This document shows, piece by piece, positions 33,341 through 35,729 of a stretch of DNA of 64,000 nt. Where the stretch lies: sequence record LC819009.1; one strand, given 5' to 3'. Below the pieces are notes generated by a model. That model was given only the letters and a program-made list of their open reading frames with translations. It made no database searches and was not told the origin of the DNA. How positions within the stretch are numbered: the first letter of the stretch is position 1; each line of letters begins with the position of its first letter. The position numbers were made by a program, and so were the translations under genes.

Positions 33341-33616
33341 TTACTCCTCGTTCAGATGCTTAATTACCTTGTCAAAGACGTCCTGCCAGGTAGCGAACGG
33401 GCCATCGAGAAATCCGATTTCCAATTCATCTTCCAGTTCAGACATGATGTCCATGTGATCCAGCGAATCCAGATCCCCGCTCTGGAAAGGCAACGCCAGG
33501 AACTCACGGAACTCCGTACTGTTCTCGACCGCGGTCTTGCGAACCGTTTTCGTGTCGTACGACGATACTACTTGGACGAGCACTCGACGTGCTTTCTGTG
33601 CTTTGGCCTCAGCCAT
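33341..33616 (-). CDS. Acyl carrier protein-like protein
   Basis: GDLDSLDHMDIMSELEDELEI aligns with ACP GADSLDTVELVMALEEEFD; Ser51 in the DSL motif; ATWQDVFDKV aligns with TTVQAAIDYI; AGGGG RBS. Confidence 0.75.
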   Translation of the reverse strand: MAEAKAQKARRVLVQVVSSYDTKTVRKTAVENSTEFREFLALPFQSGDLDSLDHMDIMSELEDELEIGFLDGPFATWQDVFDKVIKHLNEE

Positions 33617-33671
33617 TTTAAAAACCCCTGCTTGTTATTACTGTTACTGGTTTCGGTCGAAAACCAAATAA

Positions 33672-33869
33672 TCAGTCTCGCTTTATATCGTACAAATCCG
33701 TCAGTTCCGGATGGTAAACACGCAACTGAATCATGTCCCGGTTGTTCGGTACTTCGTTGAACTCGAAGAACATGTTGAACGCTTGACCTTTCTGATCCAC
33801 TACCTGGCAGAGGATGTGTCGGTCCTGTGGCAATTTATCCATCAAAGCTTTAATGTCTACCGGGGTCAT
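33672..33869 (-). CDS. Small hypothetical protein (65 aa)
   Basis: GAGG RBS before MTPVDIK. Confidence 0.6.
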   Translation of the reverse strand: MTPVDIKALMDKLPQDRHILCQVVDQKGQAFNMFFEFNEVPNNRDMIQLRVYHPELTDLYDIKRD

Positions 33870-33905
33870 AAAAACCTCAAAAAATAAGTAGGCAGCAAAA
33901 AGGGC

Positions 33906-33935
33906 GGGACAGAGTGGCCGAAGCCACTCCATCCC
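33906..33935 (-). terminator. Intrinsic terminator at the 3' end of the structured non-coding region
   Basis: GGGATGGAGTGGC-TTCG-GCCACTCTGTCCC followed by GCCCTTTT. Confidence 0.7.
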
Positions 33936-34380
33936 ATGCCTAAGATGAAACTGAACTTACATCCCTAGGTCGTCGCATCACCACAAGGAAATGACGAGTG
34001 ACGACTAAGGGCTATAAGCTTTGCAGCGTTTCCCAACGGATGCGCTACCTATAACTGGTCCCGAAAAGACCCCTTACAATCGATGCGGGCTTAATACACA
34101 CGAAGGCCAAACGACGTCCCCGCAAGCGCGAACGCGCGCGCCAGCGATTTACGTCAGGCATCACTAAGTCCTTAAAGGGAAACTCATATCGGCGGCACTA
34201 AGAGGCGGCCATGAGTCGTGATCTTCGCGCAGCTTAGAGCAGTAGTATCGAGACTCTGCCTTCACCACATACGACGTGTGTATTTCGCGGGCCTTTCACC
34301 CGAGCCAGGATATATCGCGCAATCGCACCATCCCGACCTCTGCCTCGAACAGATCTTCAGAAGCCATGTTGTTAAAGAAC
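33936..34380 (-). ncRNA. Candidate large structured non-coding RNA of unknown class
   Basis: No credible ORF; many nested helices with GNRA/UUCG loops; 10-bp long-range complement 34093-34102/34275-34284; terminator at the 3' end. Confidence 0.55.
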
Positions 34381-34430
34381 GAGACGGCTAACCAGTCCCT
34401 CACGAGATTAGGTTAGCCGCCAGATCACGC

Positions 34431-35729
34431 TTACGGTTGCAGCGTGTCGGTTTGATCAGCAGCTGCTGCGCCGTCATCGTCAGCCTTCACGTCGGTAGCC
34501 GCCGGCGTTTGGACTTCTGCTTGAACAGCAGCATCTGCGACTTCAGCGGTCGGGGCAACGTCGGCGGGAGCAGCGACTTGTTCAGCCGTCTGTTCCACTG
34601 CGGGCGTTTCCACGGCCGGAACTTCTGCTTGCGCTTGTGCAGCGTCGGTTTCCACCGGCGCGGCTTCTTGCGCTGCGTCAGCAGCTTGTTCCACCGGAGC
34701 AGCGTCGACAGGTGCGCCAGCCAGTGCTGCAGCCGTTTCCGGATCTGCATTCACTTCGGGCGTTTGTGCCAGAGCTTCGGGCGAGTGATCGACTTCTTGC
34801 GAGGTCAGATCCGCCGGAGCAGCTGCTTGTTCCACAGCGGGAGCTTCAGCTTGACCAGCATCGGCTGCCGGTGCTTCCACTTGTGCTGCGGCATCGACGG
34901 CCGGAGCCGTTTCTACCGGTGCTGCTTGCTCGCCAGCGGCGGGGTCGACTTCAGGGGCAGCTTCTTGAGCCACGCCTTCGTCGGCTACGCCGGCCGGTTG
35001 AGCTTCGACAGCAGCAGTGTCGGTCGTTTCAGCGGCAGCTTGAGCCGGAACTTCGGCTTGTGCATCTGCTGCATTCGCGTCGACTTGCGGAGCTGCGTCA
35101 GCCGGGGTTTCAGCTTGCGCTTCGCCTGCGGCCGGGTCCACTTCTGCTGCTGCGGGTGCTTCCGGAACTGCCGGGGTTTCCGGTTGTGCCGGTGCATCTG
35201 CGGGCTGTTCCACTGCCGGTGCAGCTTGTTCAGCCGTACCTGCATCCGTGCCCGCTGCCGGATCTTGTTCGACGGCCGGAGCATCGCCCGTCGGTTGTTC
35301 TTGTTCAGCTGCCGATGCGTCAGCTGCGGGAGCAGCATCCGTACCAGCGTTGTCTACCAGCACGTCGCCGGTGGGTTGTGCTTCTGCGGGAGCCGCGTCA
35401 GCAGGTGCCGGGTCTTGAGCTTGATCACCAGCGACCGGAGCCGCGTCTTGCGTTTGGTCGCCAGTTGCGATCTGGTTGTCCAGATCAGCTGCTGCTGCGC
35501 CAGCGGCTGCGGCAGCTGCCGTACCGTTGTCGCCCAGACCGAGCGCTTCGTTCGTGGTGTCGCCGAGCGGTGCGTCGCCGCTTGCCGGCGGGACGATCGG
35601 ATGGTCTTCCTTCTTCTTGTGGAAGATGCCGACGATACGTTCGACCACGTGTTCGGGCAGGGAGGCCAGGGCTTCGATCGCCAGGATTTCAGTCTTCAGT
35701 TCATCGAGAACTTTGTGGATGATGCTCAC
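34431..35729 (-). CDS. Acidic Ala/Pro/Gln-rich intrinsically disordered protein
   Basis: 432 aa; AAGGA RBS; about 40-aa helical head, then degenerate repeats (EVDPAAGE, PAVEQ, APVET). Confidence 0.8.
   Translation of the reverse strand: MSIIHKVLDELKTEILAIEALASLPEHVVERIVGIFHKKKEDHPIVPPASGDAPLGDTTNEALGLGDNGTAAAAAAGAAAADLDNQIATGDQTQDAAPVAGDQAQDPAPADAAPAEAQPTGDVLVDNAGTDAAPAADASAAEQEQPTGDAPAVEQDPAAGTDAGTAEQAAPAVEQPADAPAQPETPAVPEAPAAAEVDPAAGEAQAETPADAAPQVDANAADAQAEVPAQAAAETTDTAAVEAQPAGVADEGVAQEAAPEVDPAAGEQAAPVETAPAVDAAAQVEAPAADAGQAEAPAVEQAAAPADLTSQEVDHSPEALAQTPEVNADPETAAALAGAPVDAAPVEQAADAAQEAAPVETDAAQAQAEVPAVETPAVEQTAEQVAAPADVAPTAEVADAAVQAEVQTPAATDVKADDDGAAAADQTDTLQP

Follow-up and report, generated by a model that had tools for sequence, protein, structure and literature searches.

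A structured RNA with a putative hammerhead-type core between two genes of the Ralstonia phage FLC4-5C

The locus and its genes

The DNA analyzed here, referred to as the window, is the last 64 kb of the genome of the Ralstonia phage FLC4-5C (Chiangmaivirus, Chimalliviridae), in which positions 33600-34800 correspond to LC819009.1 195207-196407 with 100% identity. As an earlier note on this DNA had stated, the longest ORF-free stretch of the window is a gap with coding-like GC content (52.8% vs. 52.0% for the whole window). A six-frame scan places it at 33933-34430 (498 nt), with no ORF of at least 60 aa; the next-longest ORF-free gaps within the window measure 215 and 151 nt. None of nine related phage records has an annotated gene in the gap. 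The RNA of the gap is real and previously undescribed; it is about 470 nt long and extends on the minus strand from approximately 34365 to 33897, in the same direction of transcription as its neighbors, which are:

34431-35729, minus strand: gp213, an acidic low-complexity protein, with its stop codon (34431-34433) 66 nt upstream of stem I of the RNA
33672-33869, minus strand: gp212 (65 aa; true start codon ATG 33869), which may be present or absent between the RNA and the ACP-like gene
33341-33616, minus strand: gp211, weakly ACP-like, found downstream of the RNA in all Chiangmai-like phages that were examined

Searches of the neighbor proteins in Pfam, PHROGs, and the PDB gave no functional lead. 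The protein gp213 belongs to no Pfam or PHROG family, gp212 matches phrog_35443 over its full length, and the label "ACP-like" of gp211 is weak (PHROG E = 0.009, PDB E = 0.26, no Pfam match). The gene gp212 is precisely absent in FLC8, FLC6, and FLC4-11C, and in the homologous locus L022. The proposal that the RNA and both neighbors form one accessory system is not supported as a whole: Chiangmai-like phages consistently keep the RNA beside the ACP-like gene, but in L022 a further gene separates it from the acidic protein, and the core of the RNA occurs in quite different gene contexts. No promoter for the RNA was identified; a sigma-70 scan is uninformative for the phage FLC4-5C, and the invariant sequences CGUUCUUUAACAA and CUACUUAUUUUUU are not repeated beyond chance elsewhere in the window.

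Folding of the minus strand

The minus strand of the gap folds with a minimum free energy (MFE) of -219.2 kcal/mol, compared with -187.1 ± 7.3 kcal/mol for shuffled sequences (z = -4.42, none of 100 shuffles as good), while the plus strand reaches z = -3.22. All helices listed in the earlier note were found in the fold at their positions:

34302-34288, minus strand: CGGG-UGAAAGG-CCCG
34283-34275 with 34102-34094, minus strand: long-range pair
34217-34211 with 34187-34181, minus strand: GACUCAU/AUGAGUU
34156-34151 with 34117-34112, minus strand: UGACGU/ACGUCG around a UUCG hairpin
34071-34057, minus strand: GGUC../..GACC
34038-34027, minus strand: hairpin CGUU-GGGA-AACG
34011-34000 with 33974-33963, minus strand: CCCU + GUCGUC / GACGAC + AGGG

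The long-range pair, described beforehand as a perfect 10-bp helix with its 3' half in a hairpin loop, does exist, but this half lies outside any hairpin loop. The helix, called stem III below, is nested and closes a domain of three hairpins, so the pseudoknot that had been suggested is unnecessary. The terminator that was said to close the region was recovered at 33936-33905 as a hairpin with a 14-bp stem, of which 8 pairs are G-C, and a loop of 4 nt; CCCUUUUU follows it.

Homologues and covariation

Homologues of the RNA were found in nine sequenced relatives, three Logan assemblies, and one IMG/VR contig, and were aligned structurally by means of anchors and the folding of each sequence singly. 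Among 10 phage sequences, 62 pairs show changes on both sides, compared with 31.9 ± 3.2 in shuffles (0 of 500 as high), and in the whole-RNA model 89.8% of the cells are paired, against 81.6% in shuffles and 37-43% with slid partners. For the concatenated core, 98.9% of the cells are paired vs. 68.8% in shuffles and the covariation score is 0.84 vs. 0.22 (0 of 500), although these shuffle statistics, like the Fisher statistic given below, overstate independence because the sequences are related by phylogeny. Many of the conserved pairs are G-U pairs on the minus strand, which would be A-C mismatches on the opposite strand, a point in favor of the minus strand. The central claim of the earlier note, a noncoding, strongly structured, and conserved RNA on that strand, thus holds.

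Two outcomes of RNAalifold were discarded. The long-range pairs between columns 107-110/409-412 and 115-122/358-364 of an eight-sequence MAFFT alignment are alignment artefacts, as the lineages fold a local variable hairpin there, and the hairpin GCUUCUG/CAGAGGU was dropped for the inner T hairpin (see below), which is preferred because of its covariation in the homologues L021, L016, and L017.

The hammerhead-like core

The core of the RNA follows the order stem I - CUGANGA - hairpin - ... - C-GAAA - stem III - U-H - stem I', and consists of the following elements, numbered as in hammerhead ribozymes where they correspond:

34361-34365, minus strand: stem I 5' strand GGCUU, pairing with 34092-34088
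34354-34360, minus strand: CUGAAGA box, hammerhead C3-A9 (CUGANGA), directly 3' of stem I
34339-34353, minus strand: T-loop hairpin (T hairpin) UCUG-UUCGAGG-CAGA at the stem II position, abutting A9; stem covariation
34303-34338, minus strand: variable hairpin between the T and L7 hairpins, a local hairpin of different sequence in each lineage
34288-34302, minus strand: L7 hairpin CGGG-UGAAAGG-CCCG, an extra helix before G12; stem covariation
34284-34287, minus strand: C-GAA, an invariant C plus G12, A13, and A14 (G34286, A34285, A34284), invariant in all members
34275-34283, minus strand: stem III 5' strand AUACACACG; A34283 is A15.1 and pairs with U34094
34094-34102, minus strand: stem III 3' strand CGUGUGUAU; U34094 is U16.1
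34093, minus strand: H17, here U; predicted scissile bond 34093/34092, with cleavage by analogy with hammerheads
34088-34092, minus strand: stem I 3' strand AAGCC, pairing with GGCUU

The same layout is present in 23 distinct sequences. All nucleotides that are invariant in hammerheads are also invariant in the core (C3, U4, G5, A6, G8, A9, G12, A13, A14, and the pair A15.1-U16.1), and the positions that vary are those that are free in hammerheads, namely N7 (A, U, or C) and H17 (U, C, or A, never G). The CUGANGA box, invariant save for N7, lies directly 3' of stem I in 23 of 23 distinct cores; in those members that were collected with patterns containing the boxes, CUGANGA and CGAAA are necessarily invariant. 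The CUGANGA box was outside the search pattern for L015/L021, L016, L017, L022, L023, and L025, and the three of these retrieved by the L7 + GCGAAA pattern alone (L015, L016, and L017) proved to have CUGANGA, the T hairpin, and both stems as well. No search pattern contained stem I, stem III, or H17, and yet every pattern match has them at the expected distances of 0, 0, and 1 nt. Some scans yielded nothing of the family: two metagenome pattern scans for the motif returned no matches, the single match of the first viral scan (L011) is a chance match inside a coding region, and L018, L019, and L020, from the L7 + GCGAAA scan, are without the remainder of the motif and were treated as chance matches.

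The pairing of the stems is conserved better than their sequences. Stem I is 100% kept in the 10 phage sequences, where three of its five pairs covary; across the core and phage alignments, all five pairs change on both sides with 100% of the cells paired, and the family has nine different stem I sequences, all of them complementary. Stem III is likewise 100% kept in the 10 phage sequences, with U-A replaced by C-G in five of them and A-U by G-C in L022. Its first pair is A15.1-U16.1 in 12 of 12 distinct core rows and in all sequences of the H17 survey, in which the H17 site was located by stem complementarity alone, with the base unconstrained; in every member, a single unpaired nucleotide (U, C, or A, never G) parts stems III and I.

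The T hairpin varies in its stem (UCUG/CAGA, GGGG/CCCC, GUGG/CCAC, ACGG/CCGU, GCCG/CGGC, and others), and its loop fits the T-loop pattern U-N-C-R-A. The L7 stem occurs as CGGG/CCCG, CAGG/CCUG, or UGGG/CCCA. Position 2 of the T-loop and position 6 of the L7 loop covary, being U/G in 14 cores, G/A in five, and G/C in four, with no exception in the 23 cores (Fisher p = 1.2e-6, subject to the phylogenetic relatedness noted above). The variable hairpin between them is reduced to a GAAA-capped mini-hairpin in L017 and in the phage PaBG, and is absent from L016, L027, and L028.

Folding the RNA with the hammerhead-like junction yields -217.1 kcal/mol against -222.2 kcal/mol for the free MFE, a penalty of only 5 kcal/mol. 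The junction, however, is not the three-way junction of hammerheads, as the strand after A9 pairs locally to form the T hairpin and the strand before G12 is taken up by the L7 hairpin and the invariant C. A canonical stem II formed by 10.x/11.x pairing was rejected, since in most lineages the two strands do not match each other. The 10.1-11.1 pair of the window is U-A, not G-C, and the predicted cleavage triplet is AUU (GUU in relatives); AUU and GUU triplets rank as slower than GUC in established hammerhead kinetics. The predicted sites of PaBG and L027 read GUA and GUC, respectively. The L7 hairpin and the C before G12 might interfere with the stacking of A9-G12 on stem II, a requirement for catalysis. 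In all described hammerheads, no more than 1-2 nt separate stem II from G12 (PMC10085705). The architecture of the core thus differs from that of every described hammerhead, and the RNA is most likely a new hammerhead variant, for which self-cleavage is suggested by analogy.

Searches for known RNAs

The scan of the window and of 150 kb of the remaining genome gave no Rfam 15 match at the gathering score. At E ≤ 10, the region 33700-34600 has only three non-significant chance matches to Rfam 15, all below the gathering scores, and nothing relevant was found with Rfam 15 on the related loci. Known large and housekeeping RNAs (ROOL, GOLLD, HEARO, OLE, RNase P, group I and II introns, 6S, and riboswitches) gave no Rfam 15 match, and neither did the Rfam 15 hammerhead models, at the gathering score or at E ≤ 10, in the window and the compact copies L016 and L017. 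ARAGORN detected no tRNA or tmRNA gene in the window. The statement of the earlier note that the RNA does not match tRNA, tmRNA, RNase P, or group I signatures agrees with these results, but the RNA is not devoid of a known signature, because its core carries the full consensus of the hammerhead ribozyme. Likenesses to RNase P J11/12 (GGGUGAAAGG), a 23S rRNA hairpin (GCGGGUGAAAAGCCCGC), the hairpin ribozyme (GAAACACACG), and the group I R element were set aside, being without Rfam support and not conserved in the family.

Peripheral domains and terminator

Around the core, the following elements are present:

34384-34420, minus strand: hairpin H1 and then the U-rich run UCUCGUUCUUU, just past the gp213 stop codon
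34103-34274, minus strand: 172-nt three-arm domain inserted in stem III, based on covariation (helices 10-19) and the folds of nine lineages
34274-34225, minus strand: arm B1
34222-34160, minus strand: arm B2, with conserved GGCCGCC...GCCGCC
34159-34106, minus strand: arm B3, with a UUCG apex
34049-34079, minus strand: hairpin C1 UUGUAA-GG-GGUCUU-UUC-GGGACC-AG-UUAUAG, kept in Chiangmai-like phages, missing in L037
34027-34038, minus strand: GNRA-capped hairpin CGUU-GGGA-AACG; stem covariation
33954-34020, minus strand: long hairpin D1 AGCUUAUA-CCCU-GUCGUC...GACGAC-AGGG-UGUAAGUU
33897-33936, minus strand: terminal 14-bp hairpin (UUCG loop) plus U5, a predicted intrinsic terminator (terminator scan) and conserved 3' helix

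Hairpin H1, in which 6 of 10 pairs change on both sides within Chiangmaivirus, is absent in the distant homologues L022 and L037; it is probably the gp213 terminator or a spacer outside the conserved core. The architecture of the three-arm domain recurs in independent MFE folds of nine lineages despite divergent sequence, and the domain is present in the distant L037 too. In the GNRA-capped hairpin, the stem occurs as CGUU/AACG, CGUC/GACG, and UGUC/GACA, and the loop is GGGA, or GAGA in L023. Hairpin D1 (96.7% of cells paired, four pairs changing on both sides) persists in L022 and L023, where its sequence differs. The terminal hairpin, with 99.3% of cells paired and five covarying pairs, is retained in L022 and L037 without the U tract.

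The core in other genomes

Two thirds of the 23 distinct cores come from contigs larger than 200 kb, including the phages PaBG and FLC9, a bias that hints at an RNA-processing role specific to phages with their own multisubunit RNA polymerases. In many cases, the motif begins only a few nucleotides from an upstream stop codon. In L016, it lies between two ORFs on the same strand, and GGAGGU, the 3' strand of stem I, also serves as the Shine-Dalgarno sequence of the next gene. In L021 and L040, the core is located upstream of a gene for a prolyl-hydroxylase-like 2OG oxygenase. In PaBG (Baikalvirus), the motif is found at about 121,560-121,660 of KF147891.1, in a 1.5-kb unannotated gap adjoining a tRNA cluster, and L017 has a tRNA some 800 nt upstream of the motif. 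Some copies are compact, comprising about 65-75 nt between ORFs without further RNA; together with the cultivability of PaBG on P. aeruginosa PAO1, these 65-75 nt copies make the hypothesis of a self-cleaving core directly testable.

Proposed function and alternative explanations

On balance, the gap probably encodes a structured RNA with a hammerhead-type self-cleaving ribozyme core and an undescribed junction. The RNA would be transcribed, probably on the gp213 transcript, its junction would fold like a hammerhead core, and it would cut itself between U34093 and A34092. The 5' piece would then consist of the gp213 mRNA and the ribozyme body, ending in a 2',3'-cyclic phosphate. On the 3' side, the product would be an RNA of about 195 nt with a 5'-OH end, comprising hairpin C1, the GNRA hairpin, hairpin D1, and the terminator; after read-through, it would become the leader of the gp212-gp209 mRNA. 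The role of such a cut would be transcript processing, by which the fates of the upstream and downstream RNA are uncoupled, and the large lineage-specific domains may tune or regulate it. The gene contexts of the motif agree with the published finding that hammerheads flank genes in phage transcripts (PMC3088659), and transcript processing has already been proposed for those between phage genes.

Among the alternatives, one or more unannotated small protein-coding genes are extremely improbable: although ORFs of 34-57 aa are present in the gap, none is conserved, the best-placed one (AUGGCUUCUGAAG...) has its ATG changed to AGG in RsoM3USA, the homologues carry indels of 1, 2, 4, 5, 16, and 17 nt, and the substitutions are paired across helices and do not fall on third codon positions, unlike in the adjacent gp212 ORF. 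A passive gp213 3' UTR or terminator, or a DNA element such as an origin or packaging site, would have no RNA function and would agree with the position directly after gp213 and with the failure to identify a promoter. This explanation, already disfavored, is very improbable, as blocks of the region are more conserved than the adjacent coding DNA (the T hairpin is 100% identical in L022, vs. 32-57% for the neighbor proteins), and the covariation preserves RNA pairing, including the strand-specific G-U pairs. Unlikely, though less so, is a cis-regulatory leader of the gp212-gp209 operon, either an attenuator or an allosteric ribozyme, in which the 172-nt domain or the 3' hairpins would respond to a ligand or protein and set the terminator read-through at 33936-33897 or the rate of cleavage. 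In the Chiangmai-like phages, the ACP-like gene always directly follows the RNA on the same strand, past a terminator-like hairpin, and the stem III insert contains the highly conserved unpaired sequence GGCCGCC...GCCGCC, both of which would suit a leader. Against it, an alternative antiterminator pairing was not found, no known riboswitch family in Rfam 15 matches, the 3' hairpins are missing in L037, and elsewhere the core lies upstream of unrelated genes (the 2OG oxygenase in L021 and L040, tRNAs in PaBG, and others).

The alternative that deserves most weight, while still doubtful, is a stable, noncatalytic structured ncRNA acting as a scaffold, protein-binding RNA, or decoy, in which the resemblance of the junction to a hammerhead would be only architectural and the T-loop/L7 module would be a tRNA-elbow mimic that recruits some factor of the host or the phage, for example RNase P, a tRNA-modifying enzyme, or the ribosome. 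The strong predicted terminator right after the RNA fits a stand-alone ncRNA equally well, the T-loop, GNRA, and UUCG loops are hallmarks of tertiary motifs, and the motif is close to tRNAs in PaBG and L017; the large phage RNAs ROOL and GOLLD also occur near tRNAs. Furthermore, an insertion at G12 is without precedent among active hammerheads (PMC10085705). A noncatalytic RNA, however, leaves unexplained why exactly the catalytic nucleotides of the hammerhead are invariant and N7 and H17 vary within hammerhead rules, and also why compact copies of about 65-75 nt exist between ORFs.

Within the self-cleaving reading, it is possible, as a tentative extension, that the core is the first example of a new ribozyme class, derived from the hammerhead, with a four- or five-way junction that an internal tRNA-elbow mimic stabilizes. 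This class would be strongly enriched in jumbo phages, among them Chiangmaivirus (Chimalliviridae), the Baikalvirus PaBG, FLC9, and numerous contigs above 200 kb from uncultivated phages. The grafted domains would make cleavage conditional on a ligand, a protein, or a tRNA-related signal, and the RNA would thereby be a programmable processing switch for the transcripts of phage-encoded RNA polymerases.

Comparison with known RNAs

To our knowledge, no structured RNA families have been described for the nucleus-forming jumbo phages of the group to which FLC4-5C belongs. Like ROOL and GOLLD, the RNA is phage-encoded, structured, several hundred nucleotides long, and sometimes adjoins tRNA genes; unlike them, it has a ribozyme-like core and peripheral domains that differ between lineages, and it matches no sequence or structure in Rfam 15. 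In the elbow of tRNAs, G18-G19 of the D-loop contact psi55-C56 of the T-loop. The core resembles this arrangement in that positions 2 and 3 of its T-loop are matched by the last two positions of the L7 loop, with an invariant C-G contact and a second one that covaries, but the module is located inside a ribozyme-like junction, without acceptor end or anticodon arm, and both ARAGORN and the Rfam tRNA model are negative.

The hammerhead is the best-studied small ribozyme. With the type I hammerhead (Rfam Hammerhead_1 and relatives), the RNA shares the order of elements, all invariant core nucleotides, and the location between phage genes. It differs by an additional 4-bp hairpin, whose 7-nt loop is UGWAAVG, and an invariant C, both placed between stem II and G12; the result is a four- or five-way junction, depending on the optional variable hairpin. 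In addition, its loop II is a T-loop that pairs with the loop of the extra hairpin and does not contact stem I, its stem III holds the 172-nt domain, and a further 195 nt or so of RNA follow.

The mammalian hammerhead in the 3' UTR of Clec2 is discontinuous, with a large insertion in stem I and a canonical three-way junction. Both RNAs have an insertion of hundreds of nucleotides within one stem, which by analogy suggests that cleavage is regulated rather than constitutive; in the gap RNA, it is stem III that carries the insertion, and the junction, too, is changed. A large-loop mouse hammerhead is also mentioned in PMC3088659. The non-circularly permuted SGC and CSG hammerheads are natural connectivities that were missed by standard models and noticed via the conserved CUGAnGA (Eckert et al., 2023, PMC10085705). 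In these types, the three blocks are intact and their order is rearranged by means of pseudoknots, whereas the gap RNA has the classical C-G-S order with block G interrupted by a hairpin. If the core cleaves, the definition of the hammerhead would be widened, as an extra helix could be inserted next to G12 and a loop-loop contact of the tRNA-elbow type could replace the usual contact between stem I and loop II, which would bear on ribozyme engineering and on the design of homology searches.

Genomic setting and folding of the RNA locus

The genome of Ralstonia phage FLC4-5C (225,607 bp; LC819009.1), a member of the RSL2/RSF1 group in the genus Chiangmaivirus, family Chimalliviridae, contains an RNA locus flanked by gp213, which encodes an acidic low-complexity protein (432 aa; 34431-35729, minus), and by the small gene gp212, with every flanking gene on the minus strand. 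The window corresponds to the final 64 kb of this genome, positions 33600-34800 matching it at 100% identity. The gap singled out in an earlier note, here delimited as 33933-34430 (498 nt), is indeed the window's longest stretch free of ORFs of at least 60 aa in a six-frame scan, the runners-up measuring 215 and 151 nt, and its GC content is coding-like as described there (52.8% vs. 52.0% window-wide). None of nine related phage records has an annotated gene in this gap. Outside the window, positions 72,423-83,320 of FLC4-5C are annotated with a cupin and with two each of Fe-S oxidoreductases, radical SAM proteins, dihydrofolate reductases and 2OG-Fe(II) oxygenases, a metabolic or modification cluster that is unusual for a phage.

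The minus-strand RNA folds at -219.2 kcal/mol, compared with -187.1 ± 7.3 kcal/mol in dinucleotide shuffles (z = -4.42). All helices previously proposed from the sequence are recovered in this fold at their proposed positions, and a terminator scan picks up the expected terminator as a 14-bp stem followed by U5 (33936-33897). The 10-bp long-range pair (34283-75 / 34102-94), which had been taken to suggest a pseudoknot, is a nested helix closing a three-hairpin domain. Rfam 15 at gathering score yields no match, either in the window or across the remaining 150 kb of FLC4-5C, and in sensitive mode, applied to 33700-34600, just three non-significant matches, all under their own gathering scores; ARAGORN detects neither a tRNA nor a tmRNA, as anticipated.

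Conservation and covariation

The RNA region is matched by BLAST in 11 Ralstonia and Burkholderia jumbo phage records (74-100% identity), and three further Logan assemblies with the RNA were recovered via the neighbouring protein gp210. A distant relative among the Logan assemblies is L022, in which the neighbouring proteins are just 32-57% identical, and another distant member is the IMG/VR contig L037 (218,660 bp), where the RNA likewise precedes the ACP-like gene. Nine lineages, each folded independently by MFE, arrive at a common architecture despite divergent sequences.

The structure model of the window was projected onto a 10-sequence alignment, with 500 shuffles and partners slid by 1-3 columns as controls. 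Paired cells amount to 89.8% (81.6% shuffled, 37-43% slid), pairs changed on both sides to 62 (31.9 ± 3.2 and 13-23) and the covariation score to 0.294 (0.171 and 0.05-0.07), with none of the 500 shuffles as high on any measure; these figures are biased towards the model because it was derived from one of the aligned sequences and the sequences are related, but the margin over the controls is large. The main claim of the earlier note, a novel large structured phage RNA, stands, and the locus is almost certainly a real functional RNA.

A hammerhead-like core

The pattern GGUGAAARGCCYGCGAAA, taken from the most conserved loop, led to IMG/VR contigs in which similarity to the phage RNA is confined to ~90 nt. 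Their alignment exposed a common core layout, which an automated parse recovered in every member. From 5' to 3', the core comprises the stem I 5' strand; CUGANGA; a 4-bp T hairpin in the stem II position, with a 7-nt T-loop (U-N-C-R-A-G-K); an optional variable hairpin; the 4-bp hairpin L7 (loop UGWAAVG); C-GAA; stem III, which opens with an A-U pair; one unpaired nucleotide; and the stem I 3' strand. As read from the sequence, this layout is the hammerhead consensus, with CUGANGA, GAAA, A15.1-U16.1 and H17 at the correct junction spacings. The motif is single-copy in FLC4-5C.

Elements of the core in the window
34365-61 / 34092-88, minus: stem I
34360-54, minus: CUGAAGA
34353-39, minus: T hairpin
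34338-03, minus: variable hairpin
34302-288, minus: L7 hairpin
34287-84, minus: C-GAA
34283-75 / 34102-94, minus: stem III
34093, minus: U, the unpaired base H17

By these coordinates, the supposed pseudoknot helix is stem III, and the first hairpin of the earlier note is L7. When imposed on the RNA, this hammerhead-like fold lies 5 kcal/mol above the free MFE.

Two more IMG/VR pattern scans, which required only CUGANGA, T-N-C-N-A-G, GGUGNAANNCC and CGAAA, returned 7 and 14 loci; pattern-scan loci and homology-derived members together represent 23 distinct cores. No search pattern included stem I, stem III or H17; every sequence nevertheless offers a single site at which a stem III ending in U16.1, then exactly one nucleotide, then a stem I of at least 5 bp follow one another, the identity of that nucleotide having been left unconstrained. 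Across the family this unpaired H17 base is U, C or A, never G. Pairing in the concatenated core reaches 98.9% of cells (68.8% shuffled, 0/500 as high; 22-41% slid), and in stem I each of the five pairs shows changes on both sides. Position N7 varies among A, U and C and the remaining core bases are invariant, by construction in pattern-derived members but not in loci L015/L021, L016, L017, L022, L023 and L025.

At ~7260 of the window (minus), CUGACGA-CUCGA...UCGAG-GAAACC forms a canonical-looking hammerhead stem II arrangement; this is a single sequence, not detected by Rfam, and probably due to chance.

Distribution and gene context

Cultured carriers of the core are the Chiangmaiviruses, Burkholderia phage FLC9 (322 kb) and Pseudomonas phage PaBG (258 kb; locus L029), and 14 of the 21 IMG/VR contigs from the two family scans exceed 200 kb. 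The upstream stop codon often lies within a few nucleotides of the motif start. Peripheral domains vary between sub-groups: the Chiangmai-like clade has a 172-nt stem III insert (conserved GGCCGCC...GCCGCC) and a last hairpin common even to L037, with which the hairpins C1, GNRA and D1, 3' of the core, are not shared.

One distant copy (L021/L015; ~680 nt intergenic, folding z = -4.8) lies on NZ_CAAJGK010000011.1, a 286,074-bp contig, the size of a jumbo phage, of the Paraburkholderia sp. BCC1886 bacterial assembly, of which IMG/VR rates 172 kb as viral; similar IMG/VR contigs (L033, L038 and L040) span 279-324 kb, and the Paraburkholderia contig may represent a jumbo phage or large mobile element, not a chromosome. 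Downstream of the copy are genes for a prolyl-hydroxylase-like 2OG oxygenase and a DUF6817 protein, and the former neighbour recurs in L040. In PaBG (L048; KF147891.1, 120,800-122,295), the core sits in a ~1.5-kb unannotated gap immediately before a four-gene tRNA cluster (Ala, Lys, Asp, Lys), and in contig L017 a tRNA lies ~800 nt upstream of it, a proximity that may reflect a link with tRNA-array transcripts. A compact copy of ~70 nt in contig L016 (4340-4460, minus) is flanked by two ORFs on the same strand; GGAGGU, the 3' strand of its stem I, is the Shine-Dalgarno sequence of the next gene, whose ATG lies 8 nt downstream, and predicted cleavage or folding there would bear directly on ribosome access.

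In FLC4-5C, the deposited gp212 CDS (86 aa, 33672-33932, minus) begins within the terminator hairpin; conservation, a GAGG ribosome-binding site and a PHROG match over the full length (phrog_35443, 65/65 positions) place the true start at ATG 33869, giving 65 aa. Since gp212 is an optional insertion, precisely missing from FLC8, FLC6, FLC4-11C and L022, with a 4-codon remnant in FLC6 and FLC8, the constant downstream neighbour of the RNA is the weakly ACP-like gp211 (33341-33616, minus). The evidence for this label is weak, consisting of a PHROG acyl carrier protein match (E = 0.009), an ACP as best PDB match (E = 0.26) and a DSLD motif, and Pfam gives no match at E ≤ 0.01. Just upstream of the gp211 ribosome-binding site, between gp212 and gp211, lies a second hairpin, UGGUUUUCGACCGAAACCA (33648-33666, minus), which is invariant in every Chiangmaivirus; its L022 counterpart, GGUUUCUCGAAACC, is followed by U9 and is terminator-like. 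Apart from conserved adjacency to the ACP-like gene, there is no support for the proposal of a single system joining the RNA with this gene and the acidic protein.

Proposed function and alternatives

This RNA of ~470 nt is conserved and covarying, and its junction holds all hammerhead core nucleotides. The core is probably hammerhead-derived, an identity new beyond the earlier note; catalysis is inferred by analogy, and self-cleavage in vivo is somewhat more probable than not. The RNA would be produced on, or just after, the gp213 transcript, then fold and cut itself between 34093 and 34092, parting the upstream mRNA and ribozyme body from a ~195-nt 5'-OH RNA that ends at the terminator or, upon read-through, forms the gp212-gp209 leader. 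Its role would be transcript processing, as proposed for hammerheads between phage genes (PMC3088659), and the size of the inserts suggests modulation.

An unlikely alternative is that the RNA acts as a non-catalytic scaffold or mimics the tRNA elbow. A cis-regulatory leader or allosteric switch of the ACP-like operon would fit the adjacency to gp211 and is doubtful, other copies preceding oxygenase or tRNA genes. The plus strand of the gap also folds beyond shuffles (z = -3.22), and the many conserved G-U pairs mark the window's minus strand as the RNA sense; a passive UTR or DNA-level element is very improbable. The short ORFs in the gap, of at most 57 aa, lack conservation, RsoM3USA has AGG in place of the best-placed ATG, homologue indels are not multiples of three, and substitutions sit in paired positions, whereas those of the adjacent gp212 ORF follow a third-codon-position pattern, so that a coding sequence has next to no likelihood.

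Comparison with known hammerheads and the tRNA elbow

Judged by its sequences, the core is most likely an undescribed four- or five-way-junction hammerhead variant that contains a tRNA-elbow-like contact and is enriched in jumbo phages, for which a literature search found no reported hammerheads or structured RNAs of this kind. Unlike in known hammerheads, the strand after A9 pairs locally as the T hairpin, and the strand before G12 lies in L7 and an invariant C. The extra helix between stem II and G12 gives a four-way junction, which becomes five-way where the variable hairpin is present. Described hammerheads have at most 1-2 nt at this place (Eckert et al., PMC10085705), and Perreault et al. 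(2011; PMC3088659) describe hammerheads whose stem II is very short, as well as pseudoknots, without a helix of this kind. Rfam hammerhead models leave the compact copies unscored at E ≤ 10.

Covariation between position 2 of the T-loop and position 6 of L7 has zero exceptions: 14 cores combine U and G, 5 combine G and A, and 4 combine G and C, in that order (Fisher p = 1.2e-6, uncorrected for phylogeny). The adjoining C and G are invariant. In the tRNA elbow, the contacts are psi55-G18 and C56-G19, and the covarying pair with its invariant C and G follows the same pattern. By analogy, we infer that L7 would dock on loop II, rigidifying the junction and replacing the usual contact between loop II and stem I.
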